Source of the DNA: Eutreptiella sp. 'Long Island Sound 2002'
Taxonomy: Eukaryota > Protista > Euglenida
NCBI GenBank assembly: GCA_964036045.1
Contig: OZ038379.1
Location: forward strand, 65,534,001-65,598,000
DNA length: 64,000 bases
Direction: 5' to 3'
The notes beneath the pieces were generated by a model that saw only the letters and a program-made list of their open reading frames with translations, searched no databases and had not been told where the DNA came from. How positions within the stretch are numbered: position 1 is the stretch's first letter; each line of letters opens with the position of its first letter. Positions 1-29,899 of the stretch are shown piece after piece. Made by a program: the position numbers and the translations under genes.

Positions 1-1200
1 GGTGGGAGTTGATCGCAGCTATCGGTGGGGCCATTGAACCATGGGGTAAACGCGCACACACCCCCCTTCCTATGGGGCATCGGCATGGCCGACGTAGGTG
101 ACGAGGATATGGTTGCCATGGGCCATATTTGGGCTCAGGGGCGGCAAGTTGGTAGTGTGCATTTTCGTGTTCATAAGTTGTTCATAATTTGCGCGTTCAT
201 AATTCGAAAAGTGCCGTCATAAAACGCCGTGCTGCCGATTTGTGAATTATGAACACGTTTTTTGAACACCAGTTATGAACAGGCTTTATGAACACAGGTC
301 GTGCAATCCATTATTGACTGCAAAAAATTTTACTCTTGCGACAGCTCGGTGCCGGCAGCGGTCATCCTTGGTGGGGAGCAGCCGTGGCTGGCGGCTGATG
401 GGCATCAGCGTGGCTCCCCAATTGGGAGCATTTTCAACGAGGCCGTGCGGGACAATATGGCCAAGCGGTTGAATGACGTCGCTGCTCGGAGGACAACTCA
501 GTCGGATGCCAACAATCATTGTCGTTTTTCAGGTGACCCGCAAAAGTTTGGATGCGGCAGGATGCACCGGCGAGCCGTTGCTGGTCATAGCCAGAAACCG
601 GGTATTTTTGTGCATTTTGCACTGTTGCATGGCCTTCGGGAGGCTTTTCATGGCCTTTTTGGAGGCGCAGGTGGGAAATCATCCCCTTGAGGTTGCCGGG
701 GGGGGGTACAAAAAACCGGTGTGGCGTGTGGTTTGGGGCGCAGAACGCACCGGACCGGGAGGACCTGTTCTGGGACTGGGAGCAGATGGCTCCGCTGCCT
801 GCATGCGTCGAGGAGGACCCACCGTGGCAAGCGGTTGTGGGGCTCTGATCATTGCTACGCACTGTGTACTAGCCCCTTCCGGTTGTGCCACGCCCTTCGT
901 GCCGACTTGTTACTGCTGCGTTTCGGGAACACTGCTGCGGGGAGTCGGGGTCGCACTTTTTGTTGTTACTCGAAGAGGACTGTGATACAATGCTTGAGAG
1001 TGCGGATGCATGCGGGGTGGGATTGGCTGCCATGTCGGGGGATGTTGTGGAGAGCACAAATTTCATTTTTGAAGGAGGGATACAATGGGCATATTTCCAG
1101 GGGTGGGGGTGCGGGTAACAGTGCAGTGTAACGGGAAGGAATGGTCGTGTAGCACGTTTGGGAATGGTGGTTTCCAACCTTTGACCTGCCGTTGTTGCAC
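1..1200 (+). pseudogene. Family A DDE transposase (RAG1/Transib/Chapaev-like), frameshifted, with intron 148-297
   Basis: Motifs read across frames: AVAGDKDMVAMG, LGGEQPWL.RLMG, FLCILHCCMAFGRL, SHFLLLLEEDCDTML...GLAAMSGDVVESTN. These match family B at 30572-31620 and resemble the RAG1 motifs LHCDIG and GAWASEGNESGN. The GT (148)..AG (297) intron is in phase 0. Confidence 0.7.
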
Positions 1201-1315
1201 TATAACACCCCACACACCGCGGCGTGCACCGCCGCTTCTCCTCTGAGCACCACCCCCCAAGCACCCTCCACCCACGCGCCCTCTGCGACCCAGCTTTATT
1301 ACTCTTCACCCATCC

Positions 1316-3286
1316 ATGGATTCCGCCGAGCTGAGGAAGCTGCTGGAGGAGAGTAACATGGCGACCTCGCCCTGGTGGTATGCTGCCTGTCGGCTGTCGT
1401 TCGCGTTCATATTGCGTTCATAATTTGGTGTTCATGGCCCCGTGGTTGAGGGGGGAGGCCGGCCATGCATGGGGCCTGAGCCACGCCAACTAGCGCAATG
1501 TGCTGACCCTCCCCTGGATGCAGGGAGCGCTAAACAGTGGGTACTCCCCCGATGCCCCCCTTTCTTCGAGCCCCGTGGTCACTTACATTGCCCTGCGCTA
1601 GGCAATTCGCCGTCTTTTGCGGCATCGCATCCGCAACAAGGGTGCGGGGGGGGGCCTGTCGGCACACAGGGGGGGCATCGGCATGGAAGCCCCTGCCGGG
1701 AAAGCCCTTGTCCCCCATCCCCGAACCAATTGGGGCTGGGGATTTGACGCAGCCCAAAATTTCTACGGGCCCACGGGGGGCCTTGACGCGGGGGTCCCAT
1801 TGAAAGCCGTGCTTCCTCCACTGGGAGGAAACGGCGTGGGTGAAGCTGCAGCGCTCCGGGCGCAAGTTGGAGTGCATACCCCAGTAGGAATCAATTTTCG
1901 CGGGGCTATATGTCCCGGGACAGGTGGCCTCGTACCAGGGGGCTGTCGAGCCATCCCATGAAGCCCCTTGGCCGGGCAGCCCCGGCCACCACCAGCACCA
2001 TGGCCCCCGGGGGCGCCCCTCGCAGCGCAGCTGCGCATTTCCGGACCCCCCTGGGCGCCATGGGCACCGTCAGACCATAGCCGGATTTCGAGGTATGTGC
2101 GTTCATAATTCGTTCATAATTCGTTCATAATTCGGCGTTCATAATTCAGCGACCCTGCACTGTCCATTTATGAACGATGAACGCGTTTTATGAACGCGTT
2201 TGATGAACGCGTTTTATGAACGGCACTGTCACAGGTCATGGACATGGAAGTGAACCCTGCGGACGTCGCGGGGGTCTGCATCCGCTACTGGCTGGGCACC
2301 GCCGAGTACACCATCGCCCTGTCTGCCCTGTATCAGCTGCTGCTCCTCAACCCGCAACGGGGGTGCTCTTGCGGGAGTAGGAACGGTCCCGCTGCCTAAC
2401 GGACACTTGGGCGGTGAATACGCCCTGCTGGGCTAGCCTGGGTGAGTTGGGGTGGGACGGGTGTGTTGACCAGGAGATCCTGCTGTCCAGTTGTGGGTTA
2501 AGCCCACCCAGCTCCGGCAGCCCCCGCAGCACCTCCCCGGCAAAGCCCCCCCCTTCCCCCGAGAAACCCAAGCCCCCTACCCTGCCCCCCCTCCAAACCA
2601 ACCCAACCCAAAAGAACCCCCACGCAAAAAGGCAAGTCCTTCTAATTGGGCAGCACCTCATCGTCGGACCACGAAGTCCACCGTGGCCATGGGAAGGCGG
2701 TGACGGGGAAGCAGCCGCGGCAGCAAAACCGCCGCGAGGAACCCCCCTCTTTGGAGGGGGATGAGTCACCTGACCCCCTGCTTGGTGAACAGGTGTATGT
2801 GCCCGAAACCGGTGGTGTCTACCTGGGGGTTGTAACCTTGTTTGCGGGGGGGGGGGGGCGGGGGGGAGAGTGTGGTTGGAACACCTAGGGGAAAAGGCGA
2901 TGTCTCGGGTTGAGAGGCATCTGTTGTATGCCTCCCATGCTGCACCATTGACCCATTGGGAGCAGCAGAAGGATGCAGCTGCAGGTAAGAAAGCCGCCAA
3001 GGCCAAAAAGAAGCTTAACCCCAAATCAGACGATGACCCGCCAGCCGAGCCTGCCCCCAAGCCAGCTAACCCTGAACCCGAGGCTGAGGCTAAGCAGGCC
3101 CCTTAGGCCAAGCCCAAAGCTGCTCCTGATGCCCCCCCCATGGAGGTGGATGCCCCAGCGCAACCCTCGGCCCAACCGGCAGCCCAACCACCTGCCCAAA
3201 CCCCTAACCAGGCCCCTCATGGCGGCGAAACCCAAGCCACGGCCCCCCTTTGGGAGGACCCGACAGGCCCCGGCGCTGAGGTTTAG
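1316..3286 (+). pseudogene. Family A ORF2 (accessory gene, Tudor/KOW-like C-terminal domain), copy 1
   Basis: Starts MDSAELRKLLEES. Intron 2093-2234 (GT..AG) precedes exon VMDMEVNPADVAGVCIRYW. The domain LGEQVYVPETGGVYLGVVT...SRVERHLLYASH precedes a Pro/Ala/Lys-rich tail. Homologous segments occur in families B, C and D. Confidence 0.65.
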
Positions 3287-3667
3287 GGCGGCAAGAACAA
3301 GCAAGGACAAGGGACAAAGACAAACAGTGAAGTGGACAGGACATATTGAAAATTGAGCGAATTTTGTGTGCCTGTGCATCTGCTCATAGAACGCGTTCAT
3401 AAAACGCGTTCATAAAACGATCGGCGCGTTCATAAAACGAAGAGTGAATGATGAATGGAATCATGAATGGAATTATGAACAGGGGAGGATGTTTTCATCA
3501 TTTGCAAAAGAATGGCGAAAATGGCAATTTTTCCAAAAGAACCCCCGGTCGACAAAAAGAAATTCACCTCGAGGGTGTTGACCCAACCCTCCAAGTTTTG
3601 AACAAAAATTGCCCATGGGTACCCTAGCAAGAGCAAAATGCGTTCATATTTCATTAAGCGATTTATA

Positions 3668-3702
3668 ATGAACAAAACTACCTTTCATATAGGTACCAAG
3701 GG
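3668..3702 (-). repeat. Family A right TIR (35 bp)
   Basis: Reverse complement CCCTTGGTACCTATATGAAAGGTAGTTTTGTTCAT matches the left TIR at 12783 at 28/35 positions. Confidence 0.85.
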
Positions 3703-4637
3703 TGGGGGTTATTGGCTTTTTTTGCCCATGCCACGCCTAGATGGTAGGCGAAAAACCCCTGTATTGCTGACTAATGGCATTTGACGTGTTTGCGCGTTGT
3801 ACACGGGGATTGGATGCACAGTTGAGGGTATTATGTAAAAACCAGGGGACACCGCAACCAATGGAATAGGAAAGGGGTCCATCGGGGACGGGTAGTGGGA
3901 GAACCGCAAGGCACAAGTTGAACCCTTTGCGGGTTATTGGCTTTTTTTACCCATACTACCCCTCGTTGGTAGACGGAAAACCCCTGTAGCAATGACTAAT
4001 GGCATTTGACGTGTCATGTGTTGCCCACGAGGAGTTCATGCACAATCGAGGGCATTGTTTGTAAGCCAGGGGACGCCGCAACCAATTCAAAATGAATGGG
4101 TTCCATCGGGGATGGGTAGTGGGATACCTGGAAGGCACAAGTTGGACCCTTTGGGGGTTGTTGCCTTTTTTTGCCGATACCACGCCTAGTTTGTCGGCTA
4201 AAAGCCCCTGCAGTGTTGACTAATGGCATTTCACGTGATGTGCGTTGCCCACGGGGAGTTTATGCACGGTTGAGACCCTTATGTGTAAGCTAGGGGACGC
4301 CACAGCTAGTGGAAAAGAAGGTGGGTCCACTGGGGATTGGCACGCGGAGAGCTACAAAGCACAAGTTGCACCTATTGGGGGGTGGTTGGCTTTTTTTTGC
4401 CAATGCGGCGCCTAGTTCGTAGAATGAAAACCCCTGCACTGCTGATTGATGCCATTTGCCTGTTTTACCTTGCCCGCGGGGAGTTGATACACAATTGAGG
4501 GCATTATGTGTACGCTAGGGGACGTAGCAGCCAATGGAAAAAGGAATTGTGCCCCTAGGGGACGGGCACTTGGAGAACCGCGACGTACAAGTTGCACCCT
4601 TTCGCCGTATTGGCCCTTGTTGCCTGCTTCTTTGCAG
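3703..4637. repeat. ~225-bp diverged tandem repeat, ~4 units
   Basis: The anchor TTATTGGC recurs at 3709, 3934, 4158, 4383 and 4607. Units share AATGGCATTTGACGTG, GAGGGCATTATGTG and GCACAAGTTGGACCCTTT. Confidence 0.9.
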
Positions 4638-5930
4638 ATCAATGTTTGGTTCACAAGCAAGGCGTTGAGGGGGTGGCCCCCAAGCTGTGACTAGAGCAAC
4701 CGGCGGAGGGACCACTGGAGGAGGCACCAAAACAACAAGCGAACGGAGCACCGAAGGAGGCACGAACTCAGCACGGGCTAGCAGAGGCAACACCAAAGGA
4801 CACAAGAAAGGAACAAGCAAAGACGGCAAAAAAGAAGGCACCAAAGCAAACACTAACGGATTGAAGCCGCAAGCGCCAAAGAAGGCACCAAAGCAGGCAA
4901 GGAGGCAGCACCACGGAAGGTACCAAAGGCGCAAGTGCCAAAAGAGGTACCAAAGCAACCAATAGAGGCAACACCATGTGAGCCGCAAGCGCCACACGAG
5001 GCACCAAAGCTGCAAAGGCAGCACGAGAGGATGCACCAAATTAGCCAGCAAAGGTAGCACCAAAGGACACAGCCAAGCAGCCAGAAAAGATAGCAAAAAA
5101 TAAGGCACCAATACACCCGGCAGAGGCACCTCCAACAAAGGAATCAAAGAGACAAGCAGCAAACGAGGCACCACGGCATCCAGCAGAGCAACATGGGGAA
5201 TGGTTCACATCCGGGTTCTTCATACCCCGTTCGGGTCCCGACTCCGATAACTCCACTTATGCCCGATGAGGCGCCAAGTTGTCAAAGGATGAATTCACCA
5301 AGCTTACGGATCTCGAAAGGGAGGCATACAAGAAAGGCGGCCCACTAGAACGTCCCCACAACACGTGTAATTGCCCCAATTGGCCACTCATCGCAGCACA
5401 GGGAGTGGAGAGCAATGTAAAGGGAGGAGTATCGTTATGCCGCAAAGAAAGCGGTAGGGAAGGTAACCAGAGGTGGTCGGCCCGTCGGTTTCTATGTCAC
5501 AATAGCAAGGGACACAAGGACAGGAACCGAACGCGCCAGTGCCGTATTTTTACCTTCATGGAACCATGGAGGTGACGTGGGATCCCAGCGAGTTTCTACA
5601 AGCAGGTCATTGGCTGGAGCAGCATGGGTTGGCGGCAGAGGCAGAGGTAGAGGCAAAAGGACCGGGGAAGGGACATGCCGCACACCACCCGCAAGCACAG
5701 ACACAGCAACCGCAGACACGACATGCCGCGAATCAATGAGAAAAGAGATCGCAATGCAAGCATCCCGAAAATCGACGCAAAAGCTTGGGAGCAGAGCAAG
5801 CCGCCCACAATATCGGCCCCTGACCCAACATCGGCCCCTGACCCAAGAAGGCAAGGGCAATGGCAAGGGCAAGCCCGGCTTGAAGAAGGCGCGCTGCACA
5901 TCCACGGGAGCACCACTAGTGTCTGAGTCG
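4638..5930 (+). pseudogene. Degenerate ORF with APK-rich low-complexity region and GRF-like zinc finger
   Basis: Follows a TTTGCAG acceptor-like site. At 5365-5560 it reads CNC...ARRFLCH...RQC(P)YFY across a 1-bp frameshift, resembling zf-GRF (CxC...GRxFxC...CxFF). Duplicated at 20547-21850. Confidence 0.4.
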
Positions 5931-5944
5931 GACCTGGAGAAGTC

Positions 5945-8672
5945 ATAGTCTAGCAAACCGTTTTTTTTTACGCATGGCCGGATATTGCTAAGTGCCTCGG
6001 CATTAGGCCAAGCACGGCCAAGTACAAGGCCACCGCGAACATGTGGGACCTGCTGCAGGCCCTCTATTGTACATATCAGGGCCCTAACCCATAGAAGTGT
6101 ACTGCTGTGGCCCGCGATTTCCGGCGCCACTATACTGTTGGAACAGCATCATGGTATCTACTAAGCCTTTAGCATGATGTAGATACCATGTTGCAGAACA
6201 TTAAGCCATTTGGCCTGGTCTAGCGAACCGTTCTAGCGCTGATCTAGCCACCGCCGTACCGCCGCCGCTAGAACGTCGCTAGAACGCCGCTAGAACAGTT
6301 GCCTAGAACGCCGCTAGAACGCACCTGCATTTTGTTTGTGTCTTCAGGTTGTCAGCGTGCAGACTTGTGGAGCCGACCCCCGTGGGGTGCGCGTGGAGTG
6401 GCGTGATGGCGGAGGGCGGACGCGCCTCGTGGGGGTCACCGAGTTGAGCCGGATGATTGGGACGAACCCCAATTTGGCCCTCTCGGTGCCGGAGGGTTTG
6501 GGGAGGTGGGAAGGAGGCAGGAGTGCAGGGGGCATGGACCCGCAGCGCAAGGGTTGGAGGAGGTTGCAGGAACGGGCGGGGGATGACAGCAGCATCAACA
6601 CCACCACCACCAGCAGCAGCAGCACCACCACCACCACTAGCAGCGGGGGGAAGACACCCCCCCCCCCCAAGGCCTCTAACCCCCCCCCCCCCAAACCGAC
6701 CGGGCCGGACCATGGCCTAAGGTGTAGAGGAGGGCAGTCATGGTCAGGTTAAACCAAGTGCGAAGCTCCTCACGACTGGGCGTGGGTGCCTCTTCGGGGC
6801 ATGGTAACGGAGTGGGGTATAAGCGTCAACGGGCGCGAAACACCGCATGCGCCATATTTTATCCACACATCCGGCACTTCCCCCCCAAGAGAACGTCGAA
6901 TAATTGAGTTCATCCCAGTGCCTGCCTGCTTCCTGTCACACGCCACAAGTGGTAGAGCACGCCCAAAAGTCAGTGCATGCATTGACAGAGTAGACAGTGC
7001 CGGGCGCCGCCTGCAGCGACGCTCACGCCTCTCCGCACCGTCCGCCGCTGCGCCTCCGTCCGCACCTGTGCCCCTCCTGCCGATCCCCGCCTTCGATCTC
7101 CCATCTGCTTGTGTGTATGCCCTGTCGCCTCCACTCGGGGGATTGCCCAGTGCACTGTGCTGGCCATCGACCCCACCCTGCTTCACTCCCATACCGACAC
7201 TGGTGCCTGTGGGGGGGGGGGGGCAGGCACTGCTGAAATTGCCCTAAATTGTGCCAGTACCGAATCCAGTGCACTGTGCTTGCTGGCGTCCCTCCTTGTT
7301 GCGTCCTGCCCTGGTGCATGTGAAGGAGCCCCTGGGTGCTGGAGCCGCGAGTGCGGCCACCTGTCCCCCCCGCTCCTTCACAGCAGCCCACTCATGCCTG
7401 ATTTTTGCTCACTCGGCGCTCAACCCTAGAGAGAAGCGATCACCCCCGCCGAGGTGTGGGTCGTCAGCAAGGTGTACAAGCAGCAGGGCGCCCTGTTGTG
7501 CAACTGCATGTACGGCCCCAGCAAGACCGACGTCACAGCGGTACCCGTGACAGATGCCATCGTGCGATCGTTCGGGTGGTGGTTCTCGGTGCTTCGCGCC
7601 ACTATCATGCCTCTCATGCTCGCCCTTGTCAAGGAAAAGTTCGGGGCCTATCTGTGGATGTCCCTGGCCCAACTCACAGACGCCATTCGGTCGCACGTAC
7701 AGGCTGTCACCCCAGATGACGAGATGCGTTTTTGCTCCCAGATGGCAGAACATATGGCGTCGAAGCCGGCTCAGCAGGAGTTCCGCGACTCCGTGGAAGC
7801 CGACCCGGACACCTTACGTGAAGTGCTGTCTCAGCGGCGACCACCAAACCCGACTTTAGGACGGCCTCCGCGTGGATAAATATGTGGGTTGCCATGTACT
7901 CGGCCTGGGCCGATCGGATGTCTCTGCAGGTTTCCTTGGCCGCCTCGTTTGACGCAGCAGGGCTCCCGACGCCGCCCCCCTGTGATCCGGCAGTCCTGGG
8001 GTCAACTATATGCGCCCTAGCGACCACGGCGAAGCCCTTCCGCGCTATCCCGCCGCATGCCCTGGCTGCCCGTGCAGCCCCAGGCGCTGGTGCACCCGCT
8101 GCTCCCAGCCAGCCTGTTGTCACCGACACCTCTGCTCTACAGCAGGAGATGGATCTCGCCCTGGCGGTCTGCAGGGCGCTGGCCCCGGAAGCAGTCCACA
8201 CAGCTGCGTCCAGCCTCCGCCTCCACCTGTCCCCACTGCCGTCGGCCGTATCGGTGCCGATCGCCATCAAGGCGAAAATAGGCTCCCAGCTGGCCACCAT
8301 CATGTCGTCGAACCAGCTCCTTTTCGGGGCGGACGCGGCTGCAGCGGCGACGCAGCTGAAGCAGTGGCGCAAGTACATCGCCGCCAAGCCGCCATCTGCG
8401 CCGGCTGCCCCCCCGCAACAGCAATTGCTCGCAGAGCTGCAGGCAGTGCTGAAGGGTCTCGCTGACTCTACCGACTGGCCTGCAGTGGTGGGAGCCATCG
8501 CCCCTTTCCTGTCCGGCAGTGTTGCCACGAGGCAGCAGCTGCTGGATGGTTCCTCTTGGGCTGCAGAATGGTGCGCCAAGGGGTTCTGGGCTACAACCAT
8601 TCTAGGCTAGAACATCTAGGCTAGAGTGTTCTAGGCTAGAACAAGATTGGGTCTTTTACCGTGTGCCAGGGG
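5945..8672 (+). mobile_element. Family C transposon derivative, copy 1 (transposase fragment, ORF2 exon, LINE-derived cargo, terminal TIR)
   Basis: 5956-6222 encodes MWDLLQALYCTY..DFRRH...SWYLLSL.HDVDTML, homologous to the A and B transposases. An intron of CTAGAAC repeats ends at AG 6347. The exon VVSVQTCGADPRGVRVEW follows. Ends ...GTGTGCCAGGGG at 8672. Confidence 0.65.
8636..8672 (-). repeat. Family C-type TIR
   Basis: Reverse complement CCCCTGGCACACGGTAAAAGACCCAATCTTGTTCTAG; 32/37 identical to the terminus at 26890-26926. Confidence 0.75.
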
Positions 8673-10823
8673 TGATGGCCAGAAATGGTATCCGAATAAA
8701 TGAAAAAGGTATATGTTCTTGTTGTTTTGTGTCGGTAGGGTTTTTTTAGCAAGGGTTAATTTTTGCATAAAAGACTTAATATCTGGCACGTTAATATCTA
8801 TGCCGGCGACTCTTTGATTTTTAGTATTTTAAAAATTAATCCAAAAATTGAAATCACAAATTAAAAGGAGGACCATTTTAATCCGTTTTGCAAGGAAAAC
8901 GGTGACACCGCCCCCCCGACCCCCGGTTGAACATGGCACCCGATCCCGAAAGGCACCCTGTGGGGGTGCGCCTTTTATCCTCAAAATCCCTCAACCCCCC
9001 CCCCCCCCCCCCGAAAGGGTGCACTTTTAGTGAACATATTAATTTTTCAGCCAAAACTTAAAAACATTGGTTTTAACACAGGTCTGTAGGGAGGCGGGGT
9101 GGGGAGGTTGCCTACCGGGTGCCAGGGTTTGGGAAGACAGTACCGTTGGGCAAGATGCGCATTCACATTATGTTCCATGTGTACTGTGAAACACTCCTTT
9201 CTCTTTGCTTGGGTTTCTTGGGGATTCTTGTTGCGTTTTCTCTATGCCCCGTGTAAAGTGGATATGGGGGCTGAGGCGCAGCCGCTTTATGCGCAAATAC
9301 GTTTTTGTTGTAAGTTCGGCATGCGGGCAGCATGCAAGGAGGGTGTGCAAGATCTGCATGTTGAATGCCCCGTCGACGGTTGCGGCTGTGTTGGCAGTGG
9401 GGGCACAACATGCGCCCCCAATGTGGGGAGCAACACTCGGACCTCTAGGTGACTGATGAACGCGCAGAGCAAAGGGACCGGGGCCTGTGGAGCTTGTTGT
9501 CTTGGGGGAGGGGGAGGGGGCTTTTGGGGACAATAAGAGGAAATCTGGGTGGATGAAGCTCGAAAGGAAGCAGAAGCGCACAAAAAGGCGCACTACCATC
9601 CGCAGTGCCCTGAATGGCGACACGTAGGAGAGGGTGGAGGAGGGGGGGAGCGGCCTTGCGACGCCTAGGCGCTGGGTTGACGAGTTGGACAACTCGGAGG
9701 CCCCAGCAACCCTTGAGAGGGGATTTGACCAAGTGCGGAGGAACCTAAGGCGGGCAGAGGCACGGGACCTCGACTTTGTGCGTGGTGACTCCTCGTGCAA
9801 CTCGCAATCCTTCCCGGGGTCCCCTTCCTTTGCATCGCCTTCAGATGGAAGTAGGGGCCCGAAACAAAACATTTCCCAAGGTTTTGCAATGCCAAGGGAC
9901 CCGTTGGCGGCTCGGTCAACTATCTCAGTGCCTAGTACGGGTAGTTGCCCCCCCCCCCCCCCTGCCCCTTTTCGTGTCCCCCCACCCACACTCCACTGGC
10001 CTGCCAAGTAGGCTGCTGGCACCTCTGACCCTCTCTATACAGCTCGGCATGATGTCAAGCCCTATCATCGTGGCTTCTTCAGTGCCCTGCAGCCCTTCCT
10101 TGCGACACGAGGACCTCGGCGGGGGGGACATACTTGGGGGGTTGTGGGGGGGATGGTGGTTGCACAGTGGTGGCCATCAGCGCCTTTGCCAAGGCTTCCA
10201 CTTCCCCCTGGTATGGAGTTAATGAAAGGTCGGGTCTACGAGGAGGACTTGCTTTCGGTGGCGGGGGTGTTGGTGCCTGGATGGATGGAGGGAGAGAGGG
10301 GGGTGGTGTCAACATCAGGGGCTGGGGCGAGGCCCATTCGCTGAGACACCTCTCAGCCTCAGAGTCACACGAGGGCGATGGGCGTTGGTGCCCAAAACGT
10401 AGGACCTCTTGCAAATACCCAAAGACCCCCCCACCCCACAAAACCCACTTTCCAGAAGTTCTACGGTACCAAGACATTGCAGCTCATCCGGGATATCCAC
10501 AAGGGGGGGGGGGGGGTTCAATATTTTGTAGACGGGATGTTGAACCGCCGAGCCATGTATCGGTTTGCGGTTCCATATCCTACGAAGCAACCCCTGCTCA
10601 TGTGACATGGGGGCATGCGGATTGGCCGTTCACGTTTGCTCAGCAGGGACGAGGAGCACGCAGCACGGGTGCTCGAAACCCTCTTTGCTGCCTCCAAACC
10701 CCCCGTGTATCTCCAAGCCCACCCAACCCCCCGCCGTTCGCCTCGTCGACCACTCCCCTCATCCCCCCCCCCCCGCCCCCGCCACTAATCACATGAGGTT
10801 GACCCGGTTTACCCGCCACTGCT

Positions 10824-11384
10824 GTGCATCACTGCTGCCACTTTTTTCAGCCCCAAAGCCGCTGTGGACCGCCTTCGCCTCCTTCCCTGCTTACCGGTGG
10901 CAGTTTGGTTGGTTGCTACCACAACCCTCCTAGTCTTCTCCCCGCCACAGCGGCCCCCATTCGGGTCGTTGCTCCGAGCGCAAACCCCCAAATAGCGACG
11001 CCGGACTTCAATGCATCACTGCTACCACTTTTTTCAGCCCCAAAGCCGCTGTGGACCGCCTTCGCCTCATTCCCTGCTTACCGGTGGCACCTTGGTTGCT
11101 TGCTGCCACGACCCTCCTAGTCTTCTCCCCGCCACAGCGGCCCCCATTCTGGTCGTTGCTCCGAGCGCAACCCCCCAAATAGCGACGCCGGACTTCAATG
11201 CATCACTGCTGCCACTTTTTTCAGCCCCAAAGCCGCTGTGGGCCGCCTTCGCCTCCTTCCCTGCTTACCGGTGGCAGCTTGGTTGGTTGCTGCCACGACC
11301 CTCCTAGTCTTCTCCCCGCCACAGCGGCCCCCATTCGGTTTGTTGCTCCGAGCGCAACCCCCCCAATAGCGACGCCGGACTTCA
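10824..11384. repeat. 187-bp tandem repeat, 3 near-identical copies
   Basis: TGCATCACTGCT starts at 10824, 11011 and 11198. Confidence 0.95.
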
Positions 11385-11439
11385 ACGAGACGTTCCAGTC
11401 TCCAAGTCTTCGGCGACACCTGAAGAAACAAGTTTTTAC

Positions 11440-11928
11440 GGTGCTTTTCAACACCACCAGCCAATTGGTCACCATGGAAAAACGCCACAGTATTGGCTAA
11501 TGGCATTTGACGCGATTCGCCCTGCCAACGGGCAATGCATGCACAAGTGAGGGCATTATGTGTACTCTAAGAGACGCCGCACCGAATGGAAAAGGAACCG
11601 GGTCCATTGGGGCCGGGCCCTCGGAATGTCGGGGGGGGTGGGGGCACAAGTTGGACTTTTTGGGGAGTTGTTGGCCTTTTTTGCCCATGCTGCGCCTAAT
11701 TGGCTAGAATGAAAACCCTTGCAGTGCTGACTGATTCCATTTGACGTGTTGTGCCTTGCCAACAAGGTATGCATGCACAGGTGAGGGCATTATGTGTATG
11801 CCACGGGACACTGTAGGGAACAGAAAAGCAATTGGGTTCATCAGGCCGCGCACTTGGGGAACCGGGAGGCACAAGTTGGACTTTTTGGGGCGTTATGGGC
11901 CTTTTTTGCCCATACTCTATGGCATTAG
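11440..11928. repeat. ~225-bp repeat family, ~2 units, ending at a splice acceptor
   Basis: Same motifs as 3703-4637 (AATGGCATTTGACG, GAGGGCATTATGTG, GCACAAGTTGGAC). Confidence 0.85.
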
Positions 11929-12339: not shown

Positions 12340-12782
12340 CTACTTTCGTGCATGCCCATACTGCGCCTAGTCCATGGCAATGGGAACGCCTGCAACACTG
12401 TCTGATGGCATTTGTTGTGAAGTGCCTTGCCAACGTGGAATGCATGCATAGCTGAGGGCATTATGTGCACACCAAGGGACGCCGGAGCCAATGGAAAAGA
12501 AATTAGGTCCATCAGCGACAAGCAGTGGGAGAACTGGAGGCCACAATATGGAGCCTTTGGGGGGTTATTGGCTTCCTTGCCAATAATGCGCCTCGCTGGT
12601 GCAATGAAAACCCCTGCACCGCTGAGTGATGGTATTTGACGTGTTATGCCCTGCCCACGGGAAAGTCATGCACATTTGAGGGCATTACGTGTGCGCTAGG
12701 GGACGCCCCGGCCAATGGAAAGGAATGGGTTCCATCGGGGACGGGTACTGGGAGAATCGGAAGGCACAAGTTGGACCCTTTG
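12340..12782. repeat. ~225-bp repeat family, ~2 units, interrupted by family A insertion
   Basis: The unit reads ...GTTGGACCCTT-TG|element|TG-GGGGTTATTGGC. Joining the flanks restores the normal unit GACCCTTTGGGGGTT seen at 4145. Confidence 0.85.
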
Positions 12783-12817
12783 CCCTAGGTACATTTATGA
12801 AAAGTAATACTGTTCAT
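12783..12817 (+). repeat. Family A left TIR (35 bp)
   Basis: CCCTAGGTACATTTATGAAAAGTAATACTGTTCAT. Confidence 0.85.
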
Positions 12818-12904
12818 AATTCATTTTTCATATCTGAAAAATTCATATATGAACCATGAATTTTGAACAGCCTTTATGAACGCTTCTTTGTCCACAAATT
12901 TTTT

Positions 12905-14680
12905 ATGTCTTACCCTTGCTCCATCTTCACGGAGCCGAACATGATGCTTGGTCGGCTTAGTGGTGCCACCAGTCTTCGGGACAGCAAGTGTTATGACCTG
13001 TTGGACCAATGGATGTCATCGTCCCCCCTCATCTTGGCATGTTTCACGTAGGCAATGGACCACAATCCCCTTCTGGCGGTCCACAAAACCAACGTGCAGG
13101 CCATCCGTACGTATGCGGAGGCCCTCTTTCCCGCACCCTATCTGATAGGGCTCCTGTTCGAATTGGGTGCACCTCGGTCCGGCTTCCGTGTGTTGTCTGA
13201 GTACATCACTTGCCGGGGTGACGCCTACACCGCCCGCACCGGGCTGCCCTTCCCACAGCCCATCCCCACACGGGACCAATTTGACGCAACGTGGAAGTCA
13301 TTGACCGCTCCGCTTGCGTTGCCCCCCCCCCGGTGGAATATGCCGACCCCCCTTTGTCGGGTCGCTGTTGGCCCCTACGGTCATGGGCACAATACGTGCA
13401 CTCCCGGCCAGCCCTGTACCACTCTATTGACGGCACCCGCCCCCTCACCTTTCTTGTGCGGGGTGACGGGTGACCTTGCGCCCGTGGGAGTTGATCGCAG
13501 CTATCGGTGGGGCTATTGAACCATGGGGTAAAGGCGCGCACACCCCCCTTACTATGGGGCATCGGCATGGCCGTCGCAGGGGACAAGGATATGGTTGCCA
13601 TGGGCCATATTTGGGCTCAGGGGCGGCAGGTTGGTAGTGTGCATTTTCGTGTTCATAAGTTGTTCATAATTTGCGCGTTCATAATTCGAAAAGTGCCGTC
13701 ATAAAACGCCGTGCTGCCGATTCGTGAATTATGAACACGTTTTTTGCACACCAGTTATGAACATGCTTTATGAACGCATGTCGTGCAGTCCATTATTGAC
13801 TGCAAAAAATTTTACTGTTGCGACAGCTCGGTGCCGGCAGCGGTCATCCTTGGTGGGGAGCAGCCGTGGCTGGCGGCTGATGGGCATCAACGTGGCTCCC
13901 CAAGTGGGGAGCATTTTCAACGAGGCCGTGCGGGACAATACGGCCAAGCGGTTGAATGACGTCGCTGCTCGGAGGACAACTCAGTCGGATTCCAACAATC
14001 ATTGTCGTTTTTCAGGTGACCCGCAAAAGTTTGGATGCGGCAGGATGCACCGGCGAGCCGCTGCTGGTCATAGCCAGAAACTGGGTATTTTTGTGCATTT
14101 TGCACTGTTGCATGGCCTTCGGGAGGCTTTTCATGGCCTTTTTGGAGGCGCAGGTGGGAAATCATCCCCTTGAGGTTGCCGGGGGGGGTACAAAAAACCG
14201 GTGTTGCGTGTGGTTGGGGGCGCAGAACGCACCGGACCGGGAGGACCTGTTGTAGGACTGGGAGCAGATGGCTCCGCTGCCTGCATACGTCGAGGAGGAC
14301 CCACCGTGGCAAGCGGTTGTGGGGCTCCGATCATTGCTACGCACCGTGTACTAGCCCCTTCCGGTTGTGCCACGCCCTTCGTGCCGATCTGTTACTGCTG
14401 CGTTTCAGCAACACTGCTACGGGGAGTCGGGGTCGCACTTTTTGTTGTTCCTCGAAGAGGACTGTGATACAATGCTTGAGAGTGCGGATGCATGCGGGGT
14501 GGGATTGGCTGCCATGTCGGGGGATTTTGTGGAAAGCACAAATTTCATTTTTGAAGGGGGGATACAATGGGCATATTTCTAGGGGTGGGGGTGCGGGTAA
14601 CAGTGCAGTGGAACGTGAAGGAATGGTCGTGTAGCACATTTGGGAATGGTGGTTTCTAACCTTTGACCTGCCGTTGTTGC
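12905..14680 (+). pseudogene. Family A DDE transposase, full-length but disrupted
   Basis: LGRLSGATSL..., AIRTYAEAL...GLPFPQPI, TFLVRGDG (putative D1), intron from 13630, GGEQPWL (D2 position; D in family B), CILHCCM, VESTN (putative E). Several stops and homopolymer frameshifts. Confidence 0.72.
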
Positions 14681-14797
14681 ACTATAACACCCCACACACC
14701 GCGGCGTGCACCGCCGCTTCTCCTCTAAGCACCACCCTCCAAGCACCCTCCACCCACGCGCCCTCTGCGACCCAGCTTTATTACTCTTCACCCATCC

Positions 14798-17077
14798 ATG
14801 GACGCCGCCGAGCTGAGGAAGCTGCTGGAGGAGAGTAACAAGGCGACCTCGCCCTGGTGGTATGATGTTCGTCGGCTGTGGTTCGCGTTCATATTGCGTT
14901 CATAATTTGGTGTTCATAAAACCGAATGGGCCAAAAGCCCCTCCACCCCACCACCCCCTGCGTCCCCCTCCACTGCCACGTCCTTGATCTGTTGACTCCT
15001 CACTCGAGGAGTCGGTGGCGGATCGGGAGCCGGGGTGAGCGGGGTGGAGTCGCCCGGAGGAGTTGGCTTCACGAGGTGGAGGAGCTTGAGGTGGAGCTTG
15101 AGCTTGAGCTGGAGCTTGGGCTGCCAGCTGCTACTCCTGTGGATGTGGGTGAAGCTCTTCATAAAAGGGTTCATAAAACCGGTTCATAATTCATCAGTTC
15201 ATAAATCGGTTCATAATTCATTCATGACCGCAGTTGTGGTTGAGGGGGGAGGCCGGCCATACATGGGGCCTGACCCACGCCAACTAGCGCAATGTGATGA
15301 CCCTCCCATGGATGCAGGGAGCGCTAAACAGTTGGTACTCCCCCGATGCCCCCCTTTCTTCGAGCCCTGAGGTGACTTACATCACCCTGCGCTAGGCATT
15401 TCGCCGTCTTTTGCGGCACCGCATCCGCAACAAGGGTGCGGGGGGGGGGCCTGTCGGCACACACGGGGGGCATGGGCATGGAAGCCCCTGCCGGGAAAGC
15501 CCTTGTCCCCCATCCCCAAACCAATTGGGGCTGGGGATTTGATGCAGGCCAAAATTTCTACGGGCCCACGGGGGGCCTTGATGCGGGGGTCCCATTGAAA
15601 GCCGTGCTTCCTCCATTGGGAGGAAACGGCGTGGGTGAAGCTGCAGCGCTCCGGGCGCAAGTTGGAGTGCATCCCCCAGTGGGAATCAATTTTCGGGGGG
15701 CTGTATGTCCCGGGACAGGTGGCCTCGTACCAGGGGGCTGTCGAGCCATCCCATGAAGCCCCTTGGCCGGGCAGCCCCAGCCACCACCACCACTGTGGCT
15801 GCCGGGGGCGCCCCTGGCAGCGCAGCTGCGCATTTCCGGACCCCCCCGGGCGCCAGGTGCACCGTCAGACCATAGCCGGATTTCGAGGTATGTGCGTTCA
15901 TTCTTTGTTCATAATTCGTTCATAATTCGGCGTTCATAATTCAGCGACCCTGCACTGCCCATTTATGAACGACGAACGCGTTTTATGAACGCGTTTTATG
16001 AACGCCTTTTAATCAACGGCACTATCACAGGTCATGGACGTGGAAGTGAACCCTGCGGACGTCGCGGGGGTCTGCATCCGCTACTGGCAGGGCACCGCCC
16101 AGTACACCATCGCCCTGTCTGCCCTGTACCAGCGGCTGCTCCTCAACCTGCAACGGGGGTGCTCTTGCGGGAGTAGGAACGCTCCCGCTGCCTAACGGAC
16201 ACTTGGGTGGTCAATACGCCCTGCTGGGCTAGCCTGGGTGAGTTGGGGTGGGACGGGTGTGTTGACCAGGAGATCCTGCTGTCCAGTTGTGGGTTGAGCC
16301 CACCCGGCCCCAGCAGCCCCCGCAGCACCTCCCCGGCAACCCCCCCCCCCCCCCCCCGAGAAACCGAAGCCCCCTACCCTGCCCCCCCTCCAAACCAACC
16401 CAACCCAAAAGAACCCCCACGCAGAAGGGTACGTCCTTCGAATCGGGCAGCACCTCATCGTCGGACCACAAAGTCCACCGTGGCCATGGGAAGGCGGTGA
16501 TGGGGAAGCAGCCGCGGTAGCAAAACCGCCGCGAGGAACCCCCCTCTTTGAAGGCAGATGAGTCACCTTACCCCCCGCTTGGTGAACAGGTGTATGTGCC
16601 CGACACCGGTGGTGTCTACCTGGGGGTTGTAACCTTGGTTGGGGGGGGGGCGGGGGGAGAGTGTGGGAGGAACACCTAGGGGAAAAGGCGATGTCTCGGG
16701 TTCAGAGGCATCTGTTGCATGCCTCCCATGCTGCACCATTGACCCATTGGGAGCAGCAGAAGGTTGCAGCTGCAGGTAAGAAAGCCGCCAAGGCCAAAAA
16801 GAAGCCTAACCCCAAATCGGACGCTGACCCACCGGCCGAGCTTGCCCCCAAGCCAGCTAAGCCTGAACCCGAGGCTGAGGCTAAGCAGGCCCCTTAGCCC
16901 AAGCCCAAAGCTGCCCCTGATGCCCCCCACATGGAGGTGGATGCCCCAGCGCAACCCTCGGCCCAACCGGCAGCCCAAGCACCTGCCCAATCCCCTAATC
17001 AGGCCCCTCATGGCGGCGCCACCCAAGCCACGGCCCCCCTTTGGGAGGACCCGACAGGCCCCGGCGCTGAGGTTTAG
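14798..17077 (+). pseudogene. Family A ORF2, copy 2 (retains an extra exon ~14930-15148)
   Basis: Same structure as 1316-3286, plus a ~310-bp segment (PCVPLHCHVLDLLTPH...EVELELELEL) between TTCATAA clusters. Confidence 0.65.
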
Positions 17078-17598
17078 GGCGGCAAGAACAAGCAAGGACA
17101 AGGGACAAAGACAAACAGTGAAGTGGACAGGACATAATGAAAATTGAGCGAATTTTGTGTGCCTGTGCATCTGCTCATAGAACGCGTTCATAAAACGCGT
17201 TCATAAAACGATCGGCGCATTCATAAAAGGAAGTGTGAATGATGAATGGAATTATGAATAGAATTATGAAAAGGGGAGGATGTTTTCATAATTTGCAAAA
17301 GAATGGCGAAAATGGCAATTTTTCCAAAAGAACCCCCGGTCGACAAAAAAAAATTCACCTCGAGGGTGTTGACCCAACCCCCCAAGTTTTGAACAAAAAT
17401 TGCCCATGGGTACCCCAGCAAGAGCAAAATGCAATCATATTTCATTAAACGATTTATAATGAACAACACTACCTCTCATGTAGGTACAAAGGGTCGGGGT
17501 TATTGGCTTTTTTTGCCCATGCCACGCCTAGATGGTAGGCGGAAAACCCCTGTATTGCTGACTAATGGCATTTGACGTGTTGCGTGTTGTACACGGGG

Positions 17599-19715
17599 CC
17601 TGCCGGGAAAGCCCTTGTCCCCCATCCCCGAACCAATTGGGGCTGGGGATTTGATGCAGGCCAAAATTTCTACGGGCCCACGGGGGGCCTTGATGCGGGG
17701 GTCCCATTGGGAGCCGCGCTTCCTCCACTGGGAGGAAACGGCGTGGGTGAAGCTGCAGCGCTCCGGGCACAAGTTGGAGTGCACCCCTCAGTGGGAATCA
17801 ATTTTCGGGGGGCTGCATGTCCCGGGACAGGTGGCCTCGTACCAGGGGGCTGTCGAGCCATCCCATGAAGCCCCTTGGCCGGGCAGCCCCGTCCACCACC
17901 AGCATCACGGCCCCCGGGGGCGCCCCCCAGGGCGCCCCTCGCAGCGCAGCTGCGCATTTGCGGACCCCCCTGGGCGCCAGGTGCACCGTCAGACCATAGC
18001 CGGATTTCGAGGTATGTGCGTTCATTCTTTGTTCATAATTCGTTCATAATTCGGCGTTCATAATTCAGCGACCCTGCACTGCCCATTTATGAACGACGAA
18101 CGCGTTTTATGAACGCGTTTTATGAACGCCTTTTAATCAACGGCACTATCACAGGTCATGGACGTGGAAGTGAACCCTGCGGACGTCGCGGGGGTCTGCA
18201 TCCGCTACTGGCAGGGCACCGCCCAGTACACCATCGCCCTGTCTGCCCTGTACCAGCTGCTGCTCCTCAACGCGCAACGGGGGTGCTCTTGCGGGAGTAG
18301 GAACGCTCCCGCTGCCTAACGGACACTTGGGCGGTGAATACGCCCTGCTGGGCTAACCTGGGTGAGTTGGGGTGGGACGGGTGTGTTGACCAGGAGATCC
18401 TGCTGTCCAGTTGTGGGTTGATCCCCGCAAGCCCCGGCAGCCCCCGCAGCACCTCCCCGGCAAAGCCCCCCCCCCCCCCGAGAAACCCAAGCCCCCTACC
18501 CTGCCCCCCCTCCAAACCAACCCAACCCAAAAGAACCCCCACGCAGAAGGGCAAGTCCTTCGAATCGGGCAGCACCTCATTGTCGGACCACAAAGTCCAC
18601 CGTGGCCATGGGAAGGCGGTGACGGGGAAGCAGCCGCGGCAGCAAAACCGCCGCGAGGAACCCCCCTCTTTGGAGGGGGATGGGTCACCTTACCCCCTGC
18701 TTGGTGAACAGGTTTATGTGCCCGACACCGATGGTGTCTACCTGGGGGTTGTAACCTTGGTTGGGGGGGGGGGGGAGGGTGTGGGTGGAACACCTAGGGG
18801 AAAAGGCGATGTCTCGGGTTGAGAGGCATCTGTTGTATGCCTCCCATGCTGCACCATTGACCCATTGGGAGCAGCAGAAGGCTGCAGCTGCAGGTAAGAA
18901 AGCCGCCAAGGCCAAAAAGAAGCCCAACCCCAAATCGGACGCTGACCTGCCGGCCGAGCCTGCCCCCAAGCCAGCTAAGCCTGAACCCGAGGCTGAGGCT
19001 AAGCAGGCCCCTTAGCCCAAGCCCAAAGCTGCCGCTGATGCCCCCCACATGGAGGTGGATGCCCCAACGCAACCCTCGGCCCAACCGGCAGCCCAACCAC
19101 CTGCCCAAACCCCTAACCAGGCCCCTCATGGCGGCGAAACCCAAGCCACGGCCCCCCTTTGGGAGGACCCGACAGGCCCCGGCGCTGAGGTTTAGGGTGG
19201 CAAGAACAAGCAAGGACAAGGGACAAAGACAAACAGTGAAGTGGACAGGACATATTGAAAATTGAGCGGATTTTGTGTGCCTGTGCATCTGCTCATAGAA
19301 CGCGTTCATAAAACGCGTTCATAAATCGATTGGCGCATTCATAAAAGGAAGTGTGAATGATGAATGGAATTATGAATGGAATTATGAACAGGGGAGGATG
19401 TTTTCATCATTTGCAAAAGAATGGCGAAAATGGCAATTTTTCCAAAAGAACCCCCGGTCCAGAAAAACAAATTCACCTCGAGGGTGATGACCCAACCCCC
19501 CAAGTTTTGAACAAAAATTGCCCATGGGTACCCCAGCAAGAGCAAAATGCGTTCATATTTCATTGAACGATTTATAATGAACAAAACTACCTTTCATATA
19601 GGTACCAAGGGTGGGGGTTATTGGCTTTTTTTTCCCATGCCACGCCTAGATGGTAGGCGGAAAACCCCTGTATTGCTGACTAATGGCATTTGACGTGTTG
19701 CACGTTGTAAACAGG
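17599..19715 (+). repeat. Tandem duplication of ~15487-17598 (right half of family A plus flank)
   Basis: Junction ACACGGGG|CCTGCCGGGAAAG at ~17598. A second right TIR ends at 19611, followed by TG. Confidence 0.9.
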
Positions 19716-26532: not shown

Positions 26533-26889
26533 GGGGGATGGGGGGGGGGGAACCCGGCGCTCCGTGAGTCAGGTCCAGCATTGGGACCCTGTGATTGGCC
26601 ACGGCTGGCCATGGTAGCCGGTGCAGCTTCTCTTTGAGGAGTGGCGGAGCATTCATATATACTGTTCTAGCGGCGGTCTAGCGAACCGTTCTAGGGGCGT
26701 TCCAGCGACGCTCGCTAGAACGTCGCTAGAACGCCGCTAGAACGAAACATTTTTCGACTCAAAAATCAGGCGAAAACAGTGAAATTGTGAAAAAAAAAGT
26801 ATGGGCCGCCGAGTACGGATAGGGGGGTCTAGGTTAGACACCTCACCCCTCTTTTTCTATCCCCTCTAGCCGCTCTAGCCGGTTCTAGG

Positions 26890-26926
26890 CTAGAACGAGA
26901 TTGGGTATTGTAGCGTGTACCAGGGG
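26890..26926 (-). repeat. Family C right TIR
   Basis: Reverse complement CCCCTGGTACACGCTACAATACCCAATCTCGTTCTAG. Confidence 0.78.
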
Positions 26927-26932
26927 TAAGGG

Positions 26933-28850: not shown

Positions 28851-29631
28851 CACCGGGGGCTAACCGAGATGACAGTATGAGGCTCTAGATCGCCGGGATG
28901 GAGGGTGACGGGGCGGAGGGTGACAGGGTGGTGGTCGGCAATTGAGAAGGGAGGTAAGTTCCGGGGCGCCCTGCGCCCCGCCGACCGCACACCACGCACA
29001 GTTATGGGAAGTACAACGAGACTATCCCCATGTCCCCTTGCTGGCACCCTAACTGGCGATGTATGCTTACTTACCCTGTATCTGCACTCTGCTTTTTGTG
29101 TCGCTTGCCTCTTCTAATGGTGTTCTGGTAATTTGTTGCGGCGGTTTTTGATGGTTTTCCGGCAAAAATTGTCTTTGAACGTAACTATTTTTCGCACAAC
29201 AACATGGAAGACAACAAGTGTGAACGTACTAGCGGGCTGCCCCTAGGCTAGCAAACAACACAATTTTCTAGCATGTATGGCTGTCCTTTGTTGGGGGGGG
29301 AACGAACTTTGACCGTTTTTTGTTCGGGCCATTTTGCTTTGAACACCGCAAGCATTTGGCTCGAACAACCTTCCAGTTCAAGCGCGAATCAATGGACAAG
29401 CCTGATGGTCATCTAATTTTGATTTTGTCACCCGATCTGAAGGTTTGGAGACCATCTAGATGGCAAGGGTTTTTTTTCCTTGCTCTATGGCTCCCAGCTC
29501 CAAGTAATGGTAACCCCGGGTACCTGTCTGAAACATAATGACGTTCAAAAAAGGAGCATTCAATATTGAAACTTTCACTTTCGAACTTTCAATTTCAAAC
29601 AGTTTTTTGAACCAAATTTTGTTTTTCGAAA

Positions 29632-29787
29632 TTTTTTCTTTGAGCTAATGGTACAGCATGATGCATGTTGTGCACCCCCGACGGTACACCCTAGTTTTTT
29701 CAACAAAAATTTATCTTTTGAACTTTTTTTTTTGAGCTAACAGTACAGCATAAGGCATGTTGTGCACCCCCGACGGTACACCTTAGT
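29632..29787. repeat. ~65-bp direct repeat pair in family B left subterminal region
   Basis: TTTGAGCTAA..GTACAGCAT..GCATGTTGTGCACCCCCGACGGTACACC.TAGT at ~29632 and ~29724. Confidence 0.85.
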
Positions 29788-29899
29788 GTGCTTCATTTGT
29801 TATGGGGGAGGTTTGTTTGATGATCCTTTGGTATTCGTGCCCTGTGCATACCGCTGTTTGTATAGCCCTTCAGTTTGTTGTTTCTTCTTTGGGGCCAGC

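Follow-up and report, generated by a model that had tools for sequence, protein, structure and literature searches.

How does the transposase gene of a cut-and-paste transposon come to carry introns assembled from the motif of the element's own ends, and what might such introns do? The question is raised by a 64,000-nucleotide stretch of the genome of Eutreptiella sp. 'Long Island Sound 2002' (GenBank assembly GCA_964036045.1, contig OZ038379.1, positions 65,534,001 to 65,598,000 of the forward strand), referred to here as the window, in which cut-and-paste transposons of several families form a nest. The transposase genes of these families contain segments of approximately 115–220 bp that consist of forward and then reverse copies of a short family motif, namely GTTCATAA in family A, GTTCAAA in family B, GTTCTAG in family C, and GTTCCGG in family E; in family F, the motif (TAGCGCGCGCTA) is palindromic. 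The original prediction interpreted such segments as introns whose motifs change together with those of the element's ends, and offered three functions for them: internal binding platforms, substrates for hairpin-assisted splicing similar to the structured introns of euglenids, or nested miniature copies of the ends. The joint change of intron and end motifs holds in the families that it had named and in two others, E (GTTCCGG) and F (TAGCGCGCGCTA). Among the three functions, an internal binding platform fits best, judging from the identity of the motifs and their 11- or 21-bp spacing. For comparison, loci around several relatives of the transposase frame were retrieved (designated L001, L002, L003, and L007 to L011), which together with the window amount to approximately 150 kb.

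The elements are real, many-copy transposons. A target-site duplication of 2 bp was found in seven of seven complete elements (three of family A and one each of families B, C, E, and F), and the elements, whose inverted ends are approximately 36–45 bp long, begin with CCC and finish with GGG in all families. The reading frame that starts just after position 297 of the window has at least 30 relatives, with 45–94% identity, on different megabase contigs of the ENA assembly ERZ25074135, and a search of 1.8 billion proteins with a profile of this frame recovered at least 310 clusters (50% identity level), which consist throughout of short reading-frame pieces and come almost entirely from one assembly. 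Some transposase clusters comprise 22–55 near-identical members with open frames of 420–730 residues elsewhere in the assembly. The basic family A element is approximately 4.4 kb long and has an inverted end of approximately 36 bp, CCCTTGGTACCTGTATGAAAAGTAGTATTGTTCATAA. A three-way comparison with two other copies places the start of GTTCATAA exactly at position 30 of this end and finds the motif again in the subterminal arrays, as had been predicted. Within the window, a left end of family A lies at 12783 and right ends lie at 3702, 17493, and 19611; the duplications are TG in the window, AG in L001, and AA in L002. Family B occupies 29514–33917 of the window (motif GTTCAAA; duplication AA). 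Family C is represented by an insertion at 7147–9500 of L002 (motif GTTCTAG; duplication CG) and, in the window, by ends only, at 8672 and 26926, with the same motif. Family E occupies 4472–9438 of L001 (motif GTTCCGG; duplication CA), and family F occupies 5435–10611 of L010 (motif TAGCGCGCGCTA; duplication TG). The family B inverted end carries GTTCAA at approximately position 30, and the motif is found at position 30 of the inverted end in all four GTTC families. For the element in L011, the inverted-end search returned low-complexity false pairs only.

The family motifs are confined almost entirely to the ends and the intragenic segments, and neither the remainder of each element nor the flanking DNA contains more than a few. 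In the window, GTTCATAA occurs 49 times against 1.0 expected, a count reached by none of 100 shuffles, and all 49 copies lie in family A elements, below position 19390, with none in 33918–64000 or 8673–11475. Each family's own 7-mer was also counted on both strands in the terminal 150 bp, in the hairpin segments, and in the rest of the element. For GTTCATA, the family A element of L002 contains 7 copies in 300 bp of ends, 25 in 521 bp of segments, and none in the remaining 4016 bp, and the corresponding counts for the window are 4 in 300 bp, 17 in 410 bp, and none in 3564 bp. Family B yielded 3 copies of GTTCAAA in 300 bp of ends, 8 in 336 bp of segments, and 2 in 3768 bp elsewhere; for GTTCC(A/G)(A/G) in family E the counts were 5 in 300 bp, 12 in 293 bp, and 3 in 4373 bp. 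Finally, GTTCTAG was counted 7 times in 300 bp of ends, 14 times in 280 bp of segments, and not at all in the other 1720 bp of the family C element of L002, and 2 times in 150 bp, 11 times in 225 bp, and 2 times in 6014 bp, respectively, for family C in the window. The density of the own motif is 10–50 per kb in the ends and segments versus at most approximately 0.7 per kb elsewhere, and the only cross-family strays in the ends or segments are isolated copies of GTTCAAA (no more than two per compartment) and one GTTCC-type copy in a family C segment. Intron and end motifs therefore co-vary in five families (A, B, C, E, and F). Families E and F constitute independent confirmation of this co-variation, F being the stronger case because its motif is unrelated to the others.

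The arrays are also regularly spaced, at 11 bp in families A, C, and E and at 21 bp in family F. Such intervals equal one or two turns of the helix, as expected of arrays of protein-binding sites, and an RNA stem needs no such spacing. The spacers, too, are common to the arrays within a family. For example, the 30-bp string that had been noted in family C is present both in the hairpin segment (22176) and near the terminus (26715), and GTTCCGGCGACGTTCC recurs in family E, where three arrays contain it, one subterminal and one in each of the two introns. Arrays within a family, alike in spacers and in motifs, are therefore copies of each other. In family F, TAGCGCGCGCTA-like copies occupy the inverted end, a GT...AG intron (5877–5990 of L010), the stretch immediately behind the main reading frame, and three more internal places; here the palindromic motif is repeated in tandem and does not form two inverted halves, so the constant feature appears to be the site and not the hairpin.

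The segments themselves are best followed in family A, of which the window holds two copies. In copy 1, conserved coding sequence stops at 147 and restarts at 298 in the same frame. The intervening 150 nt (I1; 148–297, plus strand) run from GT to AG, carry in-frame stops, and consist of three exact forward copies of GTTCATAA and then three exact reverse copies, TTATGAAC, plus degenerate copies. I3 (2093–2234, plus strand; 142 nt) runs from GTATGT to CACAG and contains four forward copies, three exact reverse copies, and two ATGAAC-only copies, spaced at 11 and 13 bp, while I4 (3366–3483, plus strand) runs from GTGTGC to AACAG and contains three forward copies of GTTCATAA and reverse copies of the form (T)ATGAA(C/T). 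Only a remnant of I2 is left in this copy (1378–1435, plus strand), with its GT donor and three forward GTTCAT copies and with the reverse half missing; complete versions of I2 were found in L001, L002 (11031–11164), and L007. Copy 2 has I1 at 13630–13779, an I2 region at 14860–15215 (forward arrays at 14887–14918 and 15169–15215), I3 at 15888–16030, with a second copy at 18012–18154 in an internal duplication, and I4 at 19275–19392, with a second copy at 17157–17274, the listed features again being on the plus strand. When folded as RNA, I1 and I3 of copy 1 each form a single long hairpin with both intron ends at the base of the stem; measured against dinucleotide shuffles, the fold z-scores are -3.1 for I1, -4.9 for I3, and -2.2 for I4. 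The coordinates, copy counts, and ability to fold back that had been noted for 148–297 and 2093–2234 were all recovered. AGGT, which is found at both borders of two family A introns, was considered as a possible target duplication and rejected, since other introns lack it.

Comparison between families gives good reason to regard the segments as true spliceosomal GT–AG introns. Nearly all of them run from GT to AG (I1–I4 of family A, I1 and I3 of family E, I3 of families B and D, and the segments of families C and F and of L003), the exception being I1 of family B. A translated comparison of families A and B reveals a colinear, conserved gene in which homology ends at 13629 (A) and 30634 (B) and restarts after the segment. 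At one and the same codon, and always in phase 0, I1 interrupts the gene of families A, B, and E; the upstream exon closes on a complete codon in A and B. Specifically, the aligned ends of exon 1 read ...LWEDNIE in E, ...IWAQGRQ in A, and ...IWKDNLQ in B, and exon 2 of family E follows in one frame. Two relatives that lack the I1 segment, P0154 and P0153, are contiguous in frame and have an equal number of residues at the junction. Since the segments contain in-frame stops, they cannot be coding. I3 is found at the same place in families A, B, D, and E, and the start of the exon that follows it, the side of this junction that was checked, is conserved (VMDMEVNPAD in A, VEDIQVNPSD in E, VTDIHAKASH in B, VVSVQTCGAD in C, and VEYIPIN in D, the last read by eye). 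Donors recur as GT(A/G)TG(C/T) in I2, I3, and I4 of family A and in I1 of family E; the GTATGG donor of family B I1 departs from this pattern in its final base. Most acceptors are YAG, and several stand behind a pyrimidine run. Intron positions do vary between families, with I1 absent from family F, P0154, and P0153, and with an intron elsewhere in family F.

The remaining families repeat this arrangement to different degrees. The two family B introns that had been placed from 30635 and from 32271 do carry GTTCAAA/TTTGAAC: I1 (30635–30800, plus strand) has its arrays at 30681–30782, and I3 (32271–32490, plus strand), with a GTACGG donor and a TTTTTTTCAAG acceptor ahead of the conserved exon, has them at 32354–32423. 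The family C hairpin segment begins with its GT at 6218, and not at 6220 as first noted, and extends to a TCTTCAG at 6347 (plus strand); it bears GTTCTAG/CTAGAAC arrays with 11-bp spacing and folds with a z-score of -3.5. The coordinates given for its counterpart at 22128–22257 stand, as does the 3' end of the family D segment at the I3 position (27620–27756, plus strand), which ends in TTTTTGTAG and is followed by the conserved exon. GTTCTAG arrays had been assigned to both families; those of D are decayed, and the D segment folds no better than shuffles (z = -0.55). The family E gene lies on the other strand of L001, and its I1 runs from GTGTGC to TTTTTTTCTTAG. Short contigs from metagenome and read assemblies add three further families in which arrays of an own motif (CGTTCAAAG, TTCTAG, and CGTTCTAC) stand beside exons.

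Forward-then-reverse arrays are not restricted to these elements. Outside them, arrays of the unrelated motifs TACGAAAG, TTGCGTGG, GGGGATCC, and CGTGGAT were seen in L001 (2534–2709 and 3458–3625) and in L008 (7798–8122, 8511–9036, 9199–9465, and 11015–11208), and it may be that such arrays are common in this genome.

Taken as a whole, these results lead us to favor, at about even chances, an explanation in which the introns double as internal arrays of putative binding sites for an element-encoded protein and evolve together with the ends, with the hairpin a likely aid to splicing. Under this explanation, a protein of the element (either the transposase or whatever the downstream exons encode) would bind the family motif on DNA. 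Docking sites would then be spread over the whole element, the introns being the sole intragenic place where arrays can be accommodated without harm to the protein. Bound arrays could aid the pairing of the two ends, and they could also titrate the protein and so limit its activity. The arrays of a lineage do change with its ends, perhaps because they must fit the same protein and also exchange sequence by recombination. The forward-then-reverse layout would fold the pre-mRNA so that donor and acceptor lie side by side, which probably helps splicing. A hairpin requires only that its two halves match each other; that they match the ends as well, in five families, points to a shared reader, to steady exchange of sequence, or to both. 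The sequences themselves show the motifs, their restriction to ends and introns, their co-variation, the common intron positions, and the folds; splicing, the binding of a protein, and any effect on transposition are what we infer from them.

A number of observations weigh against this explanation. In family B I1, AG is missing where the conserved exon must start, and this is so in two B-like copies (window 30780–30810; P0042); the 3' border of this intron may be unconventional. In family C, the segment links two exons that are not neighbors in other families, one stopping immediately ahead of the third catalytic residue and the other normally found after I3. Judged by this exon order, the family C copy is a deletion derivative and its segment a deletion junction, not an ordinary intron; the predicted intron status rests on comparison, namely on the phase-0 position common to families A, B, and E, the recurring donors, and the segment-free relatives. 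Within family A, there is too little variation for compensatory base-pair changes, and none were found, and in an unbiased test the motif columns are 11.4% variable and the spacer columns 15.2%, a non-significant difference (p = 0.24); both tests have low power, as the copies compared are mostly dead. No transcript-derived relatives were found in the protein database, where all relatives come from genome assemblies. Finally, the co-variation could have arisen from sequence exchange alone, without any function.

The last of these points leads to a rival account in which the function of the arrays is confined to RNA: they would fold the pre-mRNA and pair its splice sites, no protein would bind the introns, and the match to the end motif would be a by-product of subterminal origin and continued exchange. 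This is a real possibility, although in our judgment an unlikely one. It draws on hairpins that exceed shuffles (z-scores between -4.9 and -2.2, and no higher than -3.1 in four of the five) and whose stem base holds the splice sites, on the retention of the hairpin in all family A copies, on the relation of arrays within a family as copies of one another, and on a euglenid host group in which intron ends are often paired (PMC4770533, PMC11282704). Nevertheless, any inverted repeat would serve to form a hairpin, yet five families each use the motif of their own ends, and the 11- or 21-bp spacing is useless in an RNA stem. The same arrays are also present in subterminal regions that are non-transcribed or untranslated, and family F has a tandem palindromic motif in place of two inverted halves. 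The hairpin-assisted splicing that had been suggested is compatible with the folds but on its own fails to explain the identity of intron and end motifs or the case of family F. The hairpins have also been considered as precursors of small RNAs, cut from the spliced introns in the manner of mirtrons and targeting all arrays of the family, which would silence that family specifically, for self-restraint of the element or for host defence. Their stems of 45–50 bp are nearly perfect, with the intron ends at the base, and no copy of the family is without the target motif, but the introns are longer than typical mirtrons and the helical spacing of the arrays is left unexplained, and we hold this account to be improbable.

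The suggestion that the segments are nested miniature copies of the ends, inserted into the transposase gene and tolerated through splicing in the manner of miniature inverted-repeat transposable elements or introners, is disfavored and seems to us improbable as well. Intron positions differ by family, so some gain or loss must have occurred; the 5' part of I1 in families E and B resembles the inverted end from approximately base 6 onward, the first motif being 24 nt away in both; and related elements do insert into one another. Against this, no segment has the terminal CCCTTGG...CCAAGGG or a 2-bp duplication at any border, the position of I1 (codon as well as phase) is common to families A, B, and E and that of I3 to A, B, D, and E, and proteins with and without I1 are equally long at the junction. 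Moreover, no free-standing family A arrays were found outside family A elements in the approximately 150 kb of window and loci. That the segments are not introns at all, but unspliced clusters of repeats in dead copies with GT and AG in place by chance, is highly improbable: every copy in the window is indeed broken, and the substitutions between the two family A copies of the window follow no codon pattern, but in-frame junctions fall at the same codon in three families, donors recur, segment-free relatives read straight through, and long open exons lie on both sides of the segments in better-kept copies.

An extension of the favored explanation, in which introns double as binding arrays, is that the array is a copyable module that has moved or been copied to new places in its own gene and created introns there, and that the protein might, in addition, recognize arrays within the pre-mRNA that encodes it, tying dosage to splicing. 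It would explain the presence or absence of I1 between families and the array-built introns found elsewhere, although we consider it rather unlikely. If true, it would represent the birth of introns from a transposon's own putative protein-binding arrays, and this in euglenids, whose structured introns have long been suspected of originating from an unidentified transposon.

Several known systems resemble parts of this arrangement. In the En/Spm-CACTA elements of plants, 12-bp subterminal motifs are bound by the protein TnpA. Arrays of subterminal repeats have been described for Ac/Ds (PMC3260210), Lemi1/Emigrant (PMC1636448), and soybean CACTA elements (PMC2613891). As in those arrays, the motif here is short and family-specific, stands in direct and inverted orientation near the ends, and differs by subfamily. 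The plant arrays are bound by an element protein, whereas binding here is proposed from sequence, and they are limited to a few hundred bp beside the ends, whereas the arrays studied here also fill every transposase intron along the element. Internal enhancers that bind transposase are known from phage Mu (its internal activation sequence), the P-element, and Sleeping Beauty. These are extra internal sites that aid the complex in which the ends are paired, as proposed here, but they are single and non-coding, and the present elements have at least four arrays, placed in introns.

Introners and other transposon-derived introns of Micromonas, Aureococcus, Amoebophrya, and Polarella (PMC11282704, PMC7789003) are likewise short, built from repeats, hairpin-forming, tied to cut-and-paste transposons, and variable in position between lineages. 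However, introners spread in host genes with inverted ends and target duplications of their own, and the segments described here lack both, reside in the transposon's own gene, and occupy shared positions. The nonconventional and intermediate introns of euglenids (PMC3935182, PMC4770533, PMC12501133) probably belong to the same host group, and in both cases RNA structure joins the intron ends, but the likeness that had been claimed is only partial. A nonconventional intron has non-GT–AG borders, and a C(A/G/T)G at positions +4 to +6 pairs with its complement 5–6 nt before the 3' border (PMC12501133). The introns here have GT–AG borders with a GT(A/G)TG donor and long stems made of motif arrays, and the CAG/CTG signature at +4 to +6 and -8 to -6 is absent; positions +4 to +6 read GGT, TGC, TGT, TGC, TGC, CAT, and TTA.

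In the literature searched, no description of these elements or of such introns was found. Subterminal binding arrays, hairpin-forming and transposon-derived introns, and an enzyme of the RAG1/Transib type are all known parts, and it is their combination that appears to be new: all transposase introns are built of the motif that marks the element's ends, their positions are shared, and in at least five families they change along with those ends. Should a protein of the element bind the arrays, the organization would be new for cut-and-paste transposons, introns concealing docking sites from one end of the element to the other, and it would also offer a clear example in nature of numerous binding sites that co-evolve with the specificity of a protein. 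The elements further provide a sequence-defined candidate for studying the origin of the structured introns of euglenids.

The transposase belongs to no Pfam family that could be found: no match was obtained for stop-to-stop frames of at least 100 aa in the first 34.5 kb of the window (beyond which a thioredoxin-like exon gave the sole match), nor for the longer transposase relatives, and a profile search by sequence against solved structures returned no match to the transposase. Its conserved stretches, RGDG(Y/F)P, GGD.PW, C(I/V)LHC, DGEE, and D..ES.N..LK, are of the kind seen in acidic-triad transposases. An AlphaFold model of P0154 (434 residues; 36 aligned relatives) reached a mean predicted local distance difference test score (pLDDT) of 78 and a predicted template modeling score (pTM) of 0.79. 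In Foldseek, this model was closest to the RAG1 core (E = 3e-9; template modeling score 0.50–0.55), then to an amphioxus RAG-like protein, and then to Transib (E = 1.5e-3), with Hermes far weaker. By predicted fold, then, the transposase is closest to the RAG1/Transib structural type. The CACTA-Mirage-Chapaev-Transib group combines a transposase of this type with duplications of 2–5 bp and CA...TG termini (PMC12730594). The predicted fold and a 2-bp duplication within that range resemble this group; the CCC...GGG termini and the lack of a sequence-level Pfam or structure match do not, the 5-bp duplication of Transib proper differs from the 2 bp found here, and of the group's zinc-binding motif pattern a conserved C-x-x-H-C was seen in the transposase, without an identifiable second pair of histidines to confirm it. 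On account of the termini and the zinc motif, the elements are placed near the group, as the model and the 2-bp duplication suggest, and not filed as members. A large, Pfam-less group of elements with a RAG1/Transib-type fold nonetheless bears on the history of this enzyme family. Homology to the transposase covers 1–1332, 13348–14832, and 30361–31631 of the window. The exons after I3 (12401–13453 of L002, and from 2235 onward in the window) encode the conserved start V.D..VNP.D and long low-complexity runs of acidic and basic residues; one stretch resembles, by eye, a small beta-barrel reader domain, in which Pfam, searched with each exon separately, finds nothing.

Every transposase gene in the window is broken. 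Alignment with intact relatives reveals, for the transposase part of each family A copy, two or more frame changes together with three or more in-frame stops; in family B, two or more in-frame stops are accompanied by no more than one frame change. Since parts of some alignments extend into introns, the counts are approximate. I2 is rearranged in both family A copies of the window, by loss in one and by inversion in the other, and the family C copy is without a large internal part. The rearranged copies have an end in an array, at I2 in both window copies and between the left part and I1 in L007. In L007, the stretch between the left part and I1 (6013–6881) is inverted, as is a stretch beside I2 of window copy 2, within 14860–15215, relative to L001 and L002. 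Because rearrangements end inside arrays, the arrays seem prone to recombination, which would also drive their joint evolution.

The layout of the nest reflects a large duplication, positions 2–8591 and 13484–24072 being approximately 95% identical. Family A copy 1 (1–3702, plus strand), in which transposase homology covers 1–1332, is cut by the window edge, which removes approximately its first 700 bp, and is approximately 95% identical to 13484–19611; its right inverted end (3663–3702, minus strand) was set by comparison with L001 and L002. It adjoins an array of a 224-bp satellite (3703–4602) that is also found at 12353–12782 and 19612–20511, and since the satellite lies on both sides of family A, the element was inserted into it. 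The satellite units are approximately 75% alike; further units lie at 11476–11916, and a piece at 17494–17598 separates two partial family A copies. Copy 2 (12783–19611, plus strand) has both inverted ends, a TG/TG duplication, internal rearrangements with an additional right end at 17454–17493, and a broken transposase gene. Its left subterminal array (12812–12881, plus strand), forward and then reverse GTTCATAA, begins within the inverted end, at position 30.

Related elements sit inside or beside family A. A fragment of a family C transposase exon (5957–6217, plus strand), recognized by tblastn with relatives and by translation, stops just ahead of the part with the third catalytic residue, and an element terminus of family C type, approximately 80 bp long with GTTCTAGGCTAGAAC motifs (8592–8672), closes copy 1 of the duplicated block. 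The other copy of the block repeats positions 5957–6347 at 21813–22257 (plus strand), as an exon fragment (21813–22127) and a hairpin segment (22128–22257). A family C subterminal hairpin array (26664–26743, plus strand) contains the 30-bp string in common with 22176, and a right inverted end of family C (26882–26926, minus strand) was recognized by its match to that of the insertion in L002; a family C left end was looked for within the window and not found. The right end is followed by a decayed family D remnant (26927–29469, plus strand), related to family E of L001 and uncertain in its bounds, and by the 4.4-kb family B element (29514–33917, plus strand), with the inverted end CCCCGGGTACCTGTCTGAAACATAATGACGTTCAA, an AA/AA duplication, and stops in its transposase gene. 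Repeats of other kinds neighbor the elements in the retrieved loci, at 1–4196 of L010, 2394–3425 of L011, and 5091–5817 of L009, and include a unit resembling a long interspersed nuclear element (with endonuclease, reverse transcriptase, and RNase H), a piggyBac-type transposase frame, and RNase H frames.

The sole piece of an ordinary gene in the window is a thioredoxin-like (Thioredoxin_8) exon at 53550–53915, which shares 94% identity with a protein derived from a transcript of sample MMETSP0810, probably a Eutreptiella. No other exon of this protein could be placed within 48–57 kb, and with one exon only, host introns are not directly comparable with those of the elements. A comparison of the window with Rfam returned nothing. 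Between the two duplicated blocks, at 10825–11385, a 187-bp unit is repeated three times in tandem with 95% identity. The region 58001–64000 contains long proline- and arginine-rich reading frames on both strands, with no family match, and its G+C content rises to 62–70%, with a G-over-C skew of 0.26–0.36 on the plus strand. Finally, runs of at least seven G or C are very common across the window (307 overlapping 7-mers), often at repeat junctions.

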